Assembly: GCA_943704425.1 (NCBI GenBank)
Contig: CALSCP010000491.1
Span: 45,448 to 109,447 of the forward strand
Source: Ministeria vibrans ATCC 50519
Lineage: Eukaryota > Protista > Filasterea
Direction of reading: 5' to 3'
Length of the DNA: 64,000 nt
In this document: in pieces, positions 56,038 to 61,478 of the stretch
Numbering within the stretch: the stretch's first letter is position 1
How the letters are laid out: the number at the start of each line of letters is the position of its first letter
The notes under the pieces: model-generated
Seen by the model: the letters and a program-made list of their open reading frames with translations, nothing else
Told to the model about the DNA's origin: nothing
Databases searched by the model: none
Translations under genes and position numbers: made by a program

Positions 56038-58820
56038 TTGTGGATATGGTACTTTGTTGGTGTATAGTACAAAGGTAGGCTTTTCGGACCCGACAAATGC
56101 GTGTGTCAAAGGAACAGTGGCTCGGTCCAAGGAACAATACCCTTGGCAAAGGGAAGGTCATCATGCTTCAACGTTCAAGTAGATTCGGTGTTGATGTAAA
56201 GTTTAACTGACAACATAAGAGCGTCAACAGCAACACTGCTGCTCAGAAACACCGCTGACTGAGACGACCCATGGCACTTTAATTAAACTTTCAGGTGACT
56301 TTCATACGACCCAAGGCACTCTGATATCACTCTCACCCTCTATCTTCTCCGTAGGAGTCAGTGAGAGATCTACAAGACTGTGCACGCCTCGGGTGCTTTT
56401 TCTCTCTCTACAAACTTTCTCTCTCACTCTTTGGACACACTCCTCCCCATGTGGAACCCAGATGCCCCGCGAAGGAGCGCCAGGATATGCCGTGACGCGT
56501 AGTAGTATTGATTGCTCCTTTTTATATAGTAGCTTTCAAGTAACCTTTCATTGATACAAGCCAACATAATGTTCTGTCACTGTCATCTTTAGAGGGTGAC
56601 GTAGTCGCGCTCTTTTATCGCATCTGCTCCTCTTTTGCATCTGTTCGCTTCCGTGATCCGTTCACCGCATGTCGTCTCTCCGACTTGGTGCTACTCGTTT
56701 GCGTCCAAGCCTTTTATTTCTTCTCAATTATCTTCTTCTTTTCCTATGAGCGTTCACCAAGGCCTTTCGTTTCCTTCTGTGCGCGCAGCGCAGCCTTTCG
56801 CTGCCCGCTGTCTTTTTGTTTTTTTTTGAAGTTCTAGCTAGCTAGGTGTAAATTTTGTGTTCCCGTGCCCCATCAACTCGCTGTGGTCCTCGTCTGTTAT
56901 TACGCGCTGGCGACCAAGCTATGCGTGCAAGTGCTCCTGCGAGGGTGCTTGGATGGATGGATAACTTCCAAAAAAATATTTACGAAGAACTTTGTCCTTG
57001 TCACTCCTCGTGGATATTTCTGTCCCATCTTTTTGTATCATCTCTCATCTCCACCACTATCACTAGCAGCATTGCTGACTGAGAAGCTGTAAAGGGAGGT
57101 CGAGACGTCATACCCTCAACGCATTAAATTAAGCCGTATATATAAATTTGAATTAACCCGTGAAATGAGATTTAATGTATTGTATTTCGCCTGATGTGAT
57201 ATTTTTAAACAACTTATTTACTCAAAAATAATATTCTGCGAAAACCATTATATTTTGCTTTAGCCGGGATAAATGATATAACCCGAATTATAACTTCATT
57301 TTGATTATCAATGGAATTAGGGTGGGCAAGATCAAGCTGAAAGCGATCGGCAGTAATGAAAGTCACTTGAAAGTTTGGTTGAAAAAAGGTACGAAGAGGT
57401 CGAGGGGTGAAGGTATCACCGACTCTTTTCTTTCGAGAAGAAAAACGACGTCGTCTTAAGCGTGCCGCGGGTTGGCAAGTCTTTGCCTTTGTTTTTTTAA
57501 AAGCCCTTCTGCCAAAATGACCACATCTCGTCGTTGGACGGAGTGCGATGATGCGAGGATAGGGGTCGCGACGTTTGTGGTGTTTGGAGAAACCCTAAGA
57601 AAAAATTGAGGTGGTTTCACACGAAGGAAACCGTGATGAGGATGACGAGAGTGTCGCCGATGGCAGGTTGTTTTTTTGGAAGTTTCCTTAGGGCAAAAGC
57701 TTCATTATACAAGACAATCTAACCAAAGCGACTGTTTCACACCCACATGAGCCGAAGCGAACAGTCCGAGAGACTTGCGCTCAAGCAAGTGAAGATGGAA
57801 GGTGATGGAGAATTTTGGGGCTCTGATTTGGTCGCCAGCAAGCGAAGTGAGGCAGCGCCAAATTCAGGGATGGTTAGACAATGAAACTTTTACCCTAGCT
57901 AGGCTAAAGTCGAGGCTAAAGTAGGAATTCCAAAATAAAGAAACCATATTATCCCAGGAGCCCGTTGACAGGCATGCATGATTCATACATGGACGCGCAA
58001 CAAGGAAGTACTCCGATATGATGAGGCAGAGGAACATGAAAGACAGCGGGCAGTGAAAGGCCGTGCGCGCTGAAGGCGACGTAGGTAATGTGGTCCTTTC
58101 CTTGGCCGGGCGGAAGCCTGGCGCGGGAAGCTGTATCTAAATTATCAACTTTCCCTCAAGACCTCAACTTTTCCCAACTTCTTCCCAACCTCCCATGGAT
58201 GAGAATGTTTAAAATTGTGGTACGCGGTCGTCGTGTACACACATTCTCTACCCTCTAACCTCTTCCTCTCTCTCTCTCTCTCTCGAGGCACGCGTAAACT
58301 TCTGTACACGACAGTCTCCAGCCGGGAGTGGACCATATATTACGAATATATTACGGCTGCTTTCGATCAAGCTAAATGCCGCCGCGAAAGGGAGCGGAAT
58401 CGAATAGCTTGGTCAACTCGGTTGGCAAACATGCAAGTTGGCTTGCCTGCGTGCGCATCTGCCAACCTAGTTCTCAATTAAGTCGCCGAGACACGAAGTA
58501 CTCTCGAAGTACACTCAGTACTGTCTCATAATTTCGCCCTCTCTCCCACCTCTTTTTAAAATTAACGACAAACATCACATACTGGCACACACACACACAC
58601 ACACGCGCACACACACGCACACAGATAAAGCATTCACCATCATGCCGCAGCGTTTGTTCACTAGACCGGTCAGAAACCGGTCATTCAACATTTTTTGCGC
58701 TATCCACCTGAGTGCTCATTTTCCAACGGTGGGACTCGGCCGTTGCCACCGTGTTGATGTATAACATAGCTATTTGCTTAATTCACCGCGGCCGGCAGGC
58801 TGTTTTTGCACCACAAACAT

Positions 58821-58927
58821 AAACGAACAAAAAACGAACAAAAAACGAACAAAAAACGAACAAAAAACGAACAAAAAACGAACAAAAAACGAACAAAAAA
58901 CGAACAGAAAACGAACAAAAAACGAAC
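58821..58927. repeat. 11-bp minisatellite (AAAAAACGAAC)n
   Basis: About 9-10 copies directly visible. Confidence 0.95.
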
Positions 58928-59411
58928 CGAATACGTCACAACAAATTGCGTCACCCAAGGATACATACATGCGAGTACTTGTAACTGCATATGAAGTCAC
59001 ATGGCTTGCTTTTAACTACGACCAATGGCCTTCCCTCACCTTTCACGCATTGTTAGCAATGTAACTTGCATTTTCCTCCGTGAATATAATAGTACTCAAA
59101 CCTATTTGGTTCCTACTTGGATCATTATTTTTTCCTCTCTTCTTAAAAGTAACTTTCTCGAACAATAAGCACCACGCACTGACACACACACATAATCCAA
59201 ACACTCACCAACACGCCGCAACGTCTCCTNNNNNNNNNNNNNNNNCGCAAGGATATATACGTGTGAGTACTTGTAACCATATACGCAAGCCTACGACTTG
59301 CTTTTCACCACGACATCTACTCACCGACACGCACTGCAACGAAAGCGTTTTTGGGAAGAAGAAATAATAAAATTAATAATCCATTATTTCTCCAGCCAGG
59401 GGTAGAACAAA

Positions 59412-61478
59412 ATGCGCTCAGTTCTCATTCACGTGCTCGCTGTGCTGCTTGTCAGCTCTACTGCATACGCTGTGTGCAACCCAACTTGCGCCAACGGCGG
59501 TACTTGCGACTCGTCCTTGTGCGTTTGCTCGTCTGGTAAGATACCCGTAACATAATAATAGTAATAATAATAATAATATAATAATGGCGTACCATTGCGA
59601 TTACCTCACTGGATAGCGATTGCACTTGTGCTTTTGTTGTAGATCTGGTGACTGTATCATGAATAAATGGGTTGTATTCTTCTTCTTCTAATTATTATTA
59701 TTATTTTTTATTCTTTTGTTAAATTGATAGCCTTCACCGGTCCATCTTGTGCGACGATTGTGGATCTGTGCGAGTCGAGCCCATGCAGCAACGGCGGGTC
59801 ATGTGTTCAGAATGGCACTGAAGCAAGCTGCGACTGTGTCGGGCATTACACGGGCGACGCATGCGAGAACGATCCGTGCACATCCAGTCCTTGTTTGTAT
59901 GGTGGCAACTGCACCATCGCCGTGTTCGAAGAGCTGCTGGCCTCGGCTGCGACATTTGCCGTGTTCGGAGGTACTGCGGGCGTGACCAGCTCCGGCGTCA
60001 GCACAGTGATCACAGGCAACTTGGGCTCCACCGGTGCTTCCACCCTTGTCACCGGGTTCCATGACACAAACACGGACTGCACCTACACGGAGACGACTCT
60101 AAATAAGGGTTTTGTTGACGGTCTTATCTATACTGCTGCACCGCCCCCAACGGCTGGCTGTCAGATCGAGGGCACTACGCAAACACATGCCATTGCAACG
60201 GCAGCACGCGGCGATATCCAGACCGCCTTCACCACTCTGGCTGGCCTGCCCTTTGACGTGTCGCAAGCCCAAAACTTGGGTGGCCTGACGTTGACACCCA
60301 ACACCTACTCGGCTGCTGCTTCGTCCTTCATCATCGAAGGAGGAGATCTTACGCTTGACGCTCTGGGTGACAGCGCTGCAATCTTTGTTTTTCAAATGGC
60401 TTCAACGTTGCGCATCGGAGGTCCAGGCGCGGCTGCTCCCCAAAACATCATCTTGGCTGGCGGCGCACAGGCAAAGAATATCTTTTGGCAGATTGGTAGC
60501 TCTGGTATTATTAACGCAGGCGGTGGTGGCACTGTGTACGGCACGTTCATTGCCGCGGCTGGAGTAGCAATATCAACCGCTGGTAATGTTGCCTTGGTCA
60601 CTATCAACGGCCGTGTGCTGTCCACGGATGCATCTGTGACCATGGTGAACACCGTTATCAATGCCCCATCTGCAACACCTGACACCTTTGAGTGCTCGTG
60701 TGCCAGCCCTTTCTATGGCGACCAGTGTGAACTCATTCCCGAGCCAGCGGTTAATTCGACAAGTTTCACTCGTTGTGTGTAAGCACCCTTAGCAGAACCC
60801 ATACTACTTTTTATACTGTTATTAATCATTATTCTGTAGGGTGCATCTTTACTGCACAGGCGATGTTTCTGCCAAATCTAACAATAATCTGCAGGCGACA
60901 ACAGGCAGCGATTACGTTCGTACCTCCTGCAAATTGGTACGCGGCGAGAGATTCTCTTTTTCATTTTTGGATTAGAATTCAATATAATAATAACATCAAA
61001 AACAACAACAACAACGACAACAACAACAATAATAATAAGAATAAGAATAATAAGAATAATAAGAATAATAAGAATAATAAGAATAATAAATTATTCTTAT
61101 TATTATTCTCATTATTATTATTGTCTTTATTATTATTATTATTGTCTTCATTATTATTATTTTGTTATTGTTTATTGTCGCTTCTCGTTTATTGCTATTA
61201 TTCATTAATGATTGATTTCTCTTCGTTTGAATATGTAGCAGAGCTCCGGGAACACATTTTGCTCGGTGGATCTGCTTGCGCGAGGATCCAACGCAACGGC
61301 ACCAACTGAAATCATTACTGCCAGTTTTTTCCCGCTCGTACATATCGGCGTAGATGAAACGGACGCTTGCACACTTGGCTCCGTGGCTGGTGGGAACAAC
61401 CTTGTCACAGGCAGTGTTGTCGAGCAGAATTCAGCGTCATGCACTGTCGTCACAAGCCGCTTTTACCGGGCGGTGTAG
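59412..61478 (+). CDS. Secreted EGF-repeat protein with DUF3494 ice-binding-like domain; exons 59412-59535, 59731-60778, 60840-60936, 61239-61478
   Basis: Signal peptide; three EGF modules; DUF3494 motifs FAVFGGTAGVT, ITGNLG, LGGLTLTP..Y, LTLDALGD.AIFVFQ, GGAQAKNIFWQIGSS, INGRVLS. Confidence 0.88.
59584..59690 (+). mobile_element. SINE-like repeat copy in intron 1 of the EGF/ice-binding gene
   Basis: Near-identical to the reverse complement of 1376-1486; sits in an (AAT)n tract. Confidence 0.6.

Follow-up and report, generated by a model that had tools for sequence, protein, structure and literature searches.

In the window, a stretch of 64,000 nucleotides from Ministeria vibrans ATCC 50519 (contig CALSCP010000491.1), we identified a four-exon gene that probably encodes a secreted protein in which an ice-binding domain (DUF3494) of bacterial origin is nested inside a split EGF module. 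On the reading that we favour, and that we consider likely as a whole, this gene was duplicated, both copies have been kept under selection, and the product displays the nested domain, with ice as the leading candidate for what it binds.

Gene structure

The frame at 59667-60782 of the plus strand is open throughout, and the predicted product, obtained by joining the exons, is 502 residues long and encoded by four exons spanning 59412-61478 (+); searches and folds were run on single exons, one by one. Exon 1 (59412-59535, +) contains the start codon, a leader of about 20 residues that ends in A-Y-A and by eye has the features of a signal peptide, and Cys1-5 of a short first EGF module (EGF1), for which Pfam gave weak hEGF and EGF_2 matches. 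It is followed by a GT donor at 59536 and a phase-1 intron that ends at 59730. Exon 1 of the paralog (described below) is also 124 nt long and also has a phase-1 boundary. Exon 2 (59731-60778, +; acceptor AG 59729-59730, donor GTAAG at 60779) has identical boundaries in the paralog and encodes the end of EGF1, the intact EGF2, the split EGF3 with the nested DUF3494 domain, and a short tail ending in F-T-R-C; its residues are numbered here from 59730, counted as the first codon. Exon 3 (60840-60936, +; acceptor AG 60838-60839, donor GT 60937) starts a cysteine-bearing C-terminal domain, of which exon 4 (61239-61478, +; acceptor AG 61237-61238) supplies the remainder together with the stop codon. 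Exons 3 and 4 keep the frame, and their products align with the single continuous third exon of the paralog.

The original prediction ended the gene at an in-frame stop at 60780. Instead, a splice donor begins at 60779, matched in position by a GT donor in the paralog, and the signal-peptide exon as well as the two 3' exons encoding the tail domain are new to the present model. The earlier expectation of a probably secreted protein without a membrane anchor is strengthened by the signal-peptide exon; no transmembrane stretch was noticed by eye in the 502 residues, and we infer that the product is secreted.

Several repeats accompany the gene. Intron 3 (window 60990-61200) is full of simple repeats rich in AT, among them a run of (aataag)n; the paralog lacks an intron at this site, and its AT-rich repeats are located in its intron 2 (L002:2550-2700). 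Upstream of the gene, window 58780-58950 consists of tandem units of about 24 nt, one frame of which reads a repeated K-T-N-K-K-R-T-K-N-E-Q peptide, and a 16-base N run (an assembly gap) occupies 59231-59246, 166 nt before the start codon.

The nested domain and its bacterial origin

The insert (59916-60677, +) comprises 254 residues: a complete DUF3494 beta-solenoid, preceded by a linker of about 7 residues and followed by one of about 5. Its match to Ice_binding (PF11999), at nt 59970-60662, scored 150 bits (cut-off 28.7) and took in positions 3-208 of the 208 in the model. Word and full-library searches gave 53-65% identity to bacterial DUF3494 proteins, with 60-65% for the beta- and gammaproteobacterial relatives; the named ones belong to Rhodoferax, Hydrogenophaga, Ramlibacter, Caenimonas, Actimicrobium, Rhodanobacter, Luteimonas and Steroidobacteraceae, and many of them carry N-terminal Big_5 domains. 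The genera of the nearest named relatives are known mainly as soil and freshwater bacteria. In the bacterial relatives the domain starts at about exon 2 residue 70 and ends at most 2-3 residues from residue 314, and since these limits coincide with the borders of the insert, the insert is one whole domain with its two linkers. The original prediction placed the entire arrangement in one exon, which agrees with the continuous alignment of the insert to bacterial homologues, free of any sign of a hidden intron, and with the open frame of exon 2.

Two cysteines of the insert, exon 2 residues 117 and 144 (nt 60078-60080 and 60159-60161), occur without exception in the 47 aligned sequences of this DUF3494 clade. 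They probably pair with each other, so that the EGF would gain no unpaired cysteine from the insert.

In a maximum-likelihood tree of 102 DUF3494 domains, the two eukaryotic copies (the window gene and its paralog) formed one monophyletic group (SH-aLRT 100) with a stem of 0.72, placed within a clade of 62 rows (SH-aLRT 97). All named members of this clade are Beta- or Gammaproteobacteria, and inside it the two copies adjoined a Hydrogenophaga group (SH-aLRT 91). Judged by these sequence comparisons, the insert is an acquisition from a beta- or gammaproteobacterium. The placement fits a single transfer, followed by nesting and then by duplication; because the insert is unmistakably bacterial, the nesting would have taken place in the eukaryote, after the transfer and before the duplication (dS 0.46).

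Two halves of one EGF module

To find out whether the cysteine-rich flanks of the insert belong to a single module, we used a 35-position profile HMM built from 229 canonical six-cysteine EGFs at other loci of the same genome. EGF2 (59763-59867, +; exon 2 residues 12-46) matched it in full, over positions 1-35, with 36.9 bits (Pfam EGF, E 9e-7). EGF3 matched in two parts. The N-terminal half (59871-59915, +; residues 48-62), which holds Cys1-Cys3 and the first hairpin residue, corresponded to HMM positions 1-15 (15.9 bits, i-E 6e-7), and the C-terminal half (60678-60731, +; residues 317-334), which holds the second hairpin strand, Cys4-Cys6 and a closing Glu, corresponded to positions 18-35 (15.4 bits, i-E 9e-7). 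The two matches are thus complementary and do not overlap, they sum to 31 bits as compared with 37 for the intact module, and the hairpin-tip positions 16-17 alone are replaced, by the 254 residues of the insert. Pfam reported one intact EGF in exon 2 besides Ice_binding, and its EGF_laminin family reached only E 0.33 on the C-terminal half.

The cysteines of EGF3 are residues 50, 55 and 61 (Cys1-3, nt 59877-59912) and residues 322, 324 and 333 (Cys4-6, nt 60693-60728). They conform to the six-cysteine EGF pattern, C-x4-C-x5-C followed after the insert by C-x-C-x8-C, with aromatic-x-Gly before Cys6, and this pattern is invariant in an alignment with 60 intact EGF pairs (alignment A2). The coordinates originally predicted for the break, with Cys3 ending at 59912 and Cys4 starting at 60693, were reproduced exactly; the large insert is likewise present, with 254 residues in place of the estimated 260 or so.

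A second locus under purifying selection

The genome contains exactly two copies of PF11999, both nested in an EGF. The second, locus L002 on contig C334 (PF11999, 150.5 bits), resembles the window gene in its signal-peptide exon, in the intron positions of exon 2 and in its split EGF3, and is 87% identical over exon 2; the complementary half-EGF matches to our HMM hold there as well. We consider the two genes to be paralogs rather than alleles, since their surroundings and tail exons differ and dS is 0.46. All six EGF3 cysteines and the aromatic-x-Gly motif are kept at this distance. The two complementary half-matches, together with their conservation at a second locus, exclude a chance resemblance to EGF. 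Beside the paralog, L002:3473-4003 (-) is an open frame that encodes a short collagen-like stretch of G-x-y and, after it, a globular part.

Between the window gene and its paralog, dN/dS was 0.136 over exon 2, with 0.086 in the DUF3494 core as compared with about 0.30 in the EGF parts and 0.38 in the EGF3 halves (33 codons). We also considered that the insert could be spliced out. The sole in-frame GT..AG pair noticed by eye would bring Cys3 and Cys4 to within three intervening residues of each other, which is not enough for the hairpin of an EGF, and given the dN/dS of 0.086 we rejected this option and regard the insert as translated.

It is hardly conceivable that the arrangement is an artefact, be it contamination by bacteria, a chimera produced in the assembly or a dead gene. 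The bacterial type of the insert and the assembly gap upstream of the start codon would fit such an origin, but the in-frame architecture occurs on two separate contigs, with eukaryotic introns on both sides, and no stop codon interrupts it. Contamination, chimerism and decay are excluded by the second locus, by the strong purifying selection and by the matching GC3 of the insert (0.58) and the upstream EGF part (0.61); the stem of 0.72 moreover indicates a long residence in this lineage.

Predicted structure

Exon 2 was modelled with AlphaFold2 in two runs. In the first, based on a bacterial alignment (A1, 45 bacterial rows), the insert reached a pLDDT of about 90, with a helix at residues 150-172 and coils on either side, that is, in prediction, the discontinuous right-handed beta-solenoid with a long flanking alpha-helix that characterises the DUF3494 fold. 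Foldseek matched the insert model with probability 1.00 and target-normalised TM scores of 0.74-0.90 to ice-binding proteins (IBPs) of solved structure, namely 6eio, 6bg8, 7bwx, 3wp9, 3uyv and others; the sequence identity of the insert to any such IBP was only 25-32%. Every EGF part, the intact EGF2 included, remained below a pLDDT of 55.

The second run used the query, the paralog and the 60 intact EGF pairs of alignment A2, in which intact modules are aligned across the insert; it was limited to EGF rows because MAFFT --auto misplaces these once bacterial rows are added. Here the pLDDT was 85-95 for residues 1-60 and 94 and 86 in residues 321-340, and the insert was poorly modelled. EGF3 scored 86-94 (about 91-93 in its N-terminal half), and residues 60-63 and 320-323 formed the strand pair of the EGF hairpin. 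Tandem-EGF crystal structures superposed on the trimmed model (residues 10-337), among them DLK1 (76 of 78 residues, Z 6.1), Del-1 and Notch-1. Since the alignment presupposes EGF homology, we take this run as a sign of feasibility and not as proof. The check by structure prediction that had been suggested with the original prediction therefore yielded the solenoid in one run and the reassembled EGF3 in the other, not both with confidence in a single model.

The low scores of the first run, together with a dN/dS in the EGF3 halves (0.38, 33 codons) above that of the insert, could mean that the cysteine-rich flanks are relics that no longer fold as an EGF and serve as linkers only, or pair with other cysteines. 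We find this improbable. In that run the scores of the intact EGF2 were just as low, which points to the depth of an alignment without EGF rows as the cause; the EGF3 halves nearly add up to the score of an intact module without overlapping, the six cysteines and the aromatic-x-Gly motif survive at the divergence of the two genes, the EGF-aware model pairs the two hairpin strands, and at least 11 other modules of the genome are broken at the same point (see below). Most likely, as far as sequence patterns and models indicate, the EGF3 halves fold back into one EGF with a Cys2-Cys4 bond across the insert.

The geometry of the DUF3494 fold is compatible with such an insertion. Its final coil adjoins the initial coil (PMC11645318), so the ends of the chain can exit side by side, as an insert in a loop needs; the original prediction, which had both termini at the same end, agrees with this description. 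Its central proposal, that of a domain within a domain, is borne out by the complementary halves, the six cysteines kept in the paralog, the adjacent ends of the fold and the reassembly in the EGF-aware AlphaFold run.

The C-terminal tail domain

The last 115 residues or so of the product form the cysteine-bearing tail domain, which matched no Pfam family in our scan and gave matches only at noise level in the Atlas. The domain is shared with the paralog and with two small secreted proteins of the genome (L034 and L035), and in all four two tail cysteines are spaced by nine residues. The latter two genes (L034:1270-1851 (+) and L035:1483-1994 (-)) encode a signal peptide and an A-F-S/A-R-C motif, followed by an intron and a domain of about 107 residues. 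In the window gene, their F-x-R-C motif with the intron just downstream has its counterpart where exon 2 ends, a correspondence which suggests that a gene of the L034/L035 kind received the EGF block between its leader and its body.

Other split EGFs in the genome

We applied the half-profile method to about 170 kb of loci, a part of the genome that had been fetched for EGF similarity alone. It revealed at least 11 additional, distinct EGFs that are split at the point seen in EGF3; their inserts are 119-199 residues long and their frames continuous. The number is a lower bound, as some of the following loci overlap one another. On the plus strand they are L010:1651-2274, L010:2626-3231, L014:916-1521, L021:493-945 and L029:810-1430, and on the minus strand L004:1003-1635, L004:2460-3104, L016:282-905, L017:439-1080, L019:1291-1755, L019:2218-2685, L023:2410-3048, L024:391-1086 and L028:862-1548. 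As in EGF3, the match to the profile breaks off after positions 12-18 and resumes at positions 17-21. These modules differ from EGF3 in that they hold other insert families, namely DUF4082 and beta-rich domains without a name, and belong to giant multi-EGF proteins, whereas the gene with the ice-binding domain is a small one, with an insert far closer to its bacterial relatives. Ten of the inserts were scanned with Pfam: three matched DUF4082 (one just above and two just below the cut-off), and the other seven, apart from the EGF halves, came near no family cut-off.

The gene described here is thus one instance of an EGF nesting that is lineage-wide, and the one with the clearest outside origin. 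A broader reading, to which we give rather little credence for now, is that the lineage recurrently grafts whole foreign domains, bacterial ones included, into the hairpin tips of EGFs, the EGF serving as a general display socket.

Occurrence elsewhere and comparison with known systems

A search of 1.84 billion cluster representatives with exon 2 returned 6861 matches, and among the best 150 of these none showed the nested layout, as none ran beyond query residue 324; those matching in several stretches were tandem DUF3494 or Big_5 proteins. A word search with the C-terminal junction recovered the DUF3494 end only, with no EGF continuation, and scanning metagenomes with the junction peptide yielded 54 loci; in the four longest matches a stop codon directly follows the domain, as in bacteria. 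The literature that we searched contained no mention of DUF3494 together with EGF, a survey of prokaryotic IBP architectures included no EGF, and a search for split or interrupted EGFs returned only papers on split EGFP. The EGF-nested DUF3494 was therefore found in no described ice-binding protein and in none of the protein and metagenome collections searched. With regard to the host organism itself, its cytosolic Hsp70 (L037:1489-3399 (+), and L040) is intron-less and has its best named matches in animals (70-73%, Hsc70). The environmental contig ENA ERZ23497041 carries a 100% identical Hsp70, so that the organism or a very close relative was present in that sample.

The nested design as such has a precedent in laminin, where the L4 domain is inserted between Cys3 and Cys4 of an LE module (PMC5338690), the same site as in EGF3. 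The LE host, however, has eight cysteines and EGF3 six; L4 is a CBM35-like beta-sandwich, in contrast to the beta-solenoid with flanking helix found here; and L4 is an old animal matrix domain, whereas the present insert is a datable bacterial import. With its six-cysteine host and PF11999 insert, the protein may work in a laminin-like manner without being a member of the laminin family. In view of this precedent and of the many other nested EGFs in the genome, the novelty that had been claimed for the original prediction holds for this particular insert, which we did not find elsewhere, and not for the nested-EGF design.

Compared with proteobacterial DUF3494 proteins (e.g., P0007 from Rhodoferax ferrireducens and P0029 from Hydrogenophaga), the insert shares the whole domain at 60-65% identity, its limits and the invariant internal cysteine pair. 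The bacterial domain forms the C-terminal end of its protein, usually after Big_5 or a lipoprotein leader, and the gene stops directly after it, whereas here the domain is internal, with EGF halves on both sides. Eukaryotic DUF3494 proteins from algae, fungi and bdelloid rotifers resemble the present one in their bacterial origin, secretion signal and eukaryotic genomic context (PMC11912409, PMC11645318). In the sources consulted they are described as stand-alone domains, unlike the nested one. One eukaryotic DUF3494 protein is reported to have an added root-cap domain.

Proposed model and function

In the model that we favour, a DUF3494 domain would have been transferred horizontally from a beta- or gammaproteobacterium and placed in frame inside an EGF within this eukaryotic lineage; the whole gene would then have been duplicated, and selection would keep both copies. 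The chain would consist, in this order, of the signal peptide, EGF1, EGF2, EGF3 with the solenoid in its Cys3-Cys4 hairpin tip, and the tail domain. The halves of EGF3 would refold, with the Cys2-Cys4 bond bridging the insert. Because the first and last coils lie side by side, the solenoid would jut sideways from a short, disulfide-stiffened stalk of three EGFs, and the chain would run on into the tail domain, which may be free for another contact. The displayed domain would bind an ordered surface outside the cell.

As for the nature of this surface, ice is the leading candidate, and from the sequence family and the predicted fold we would give it about an even chance. The fold of the insert matches ice-active proteins with TM scores of 0.8-0.9, and the eukaryotic DUF3494 proteins known by 2024 were all from icy habitats (PMC11645318). 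Weighing against ice are the identity of only 25-32% to solved IBPs, the nearest named relatives from genera known mainly from soil and fresh water, and the presence of DUF3494 in ice-free settings as well. It is possible, though on the present evidence rather unlikely, that with the same nesting the domain binds a mineral, a polysaccharide or the surface of another cell, as an adhesin or matrix component unrelated to freezing. Such a role would accord with the nearest named relatives (Hydrogenophaga, Rhodoferax, Ramlibacter, Caenimonas, Rhodanobacter and Luteimonas), most of which combine the domain with Big_5 surface domains, and with the many other binding-type domains that the host genome nests in EGFs. 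The DUF3494 family is also represented in caves, groundwater and hot springs, and its members may bind substrates other than ice (PMC11645318); temperate rotifers possess such proteins too (PMC11912409). Both the habitats of the eukaryotic proteins and the fold match nevertheless speak against this alternative, and we retain ice as the leading candidate.

Significance

On the favoured reading, this DUF3494 domain would be the first to be displayed from a loop on a disulfide-bonded stalk instead of standing free or at a chain end, and it suggests a way to fix the distance and the orientation of a binding face relative to the cell coat or matrix. As a case of domain insertion it is unusually clean, since the origin of the insert can be traced, its borders are those of the natural domain and the host module around it is intact. 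With it and the other nested EGFs of the genome, one can test how grafts of this kind come about and why they are tolerated in the EGF hairpin. It also offers a natural precedent for the use of EGF in protein engineering, as a scaffold for loop-displayed domains. If the lineage does use EGF as a display socket for foreign domains, the gene would be a datable case of such grafting.
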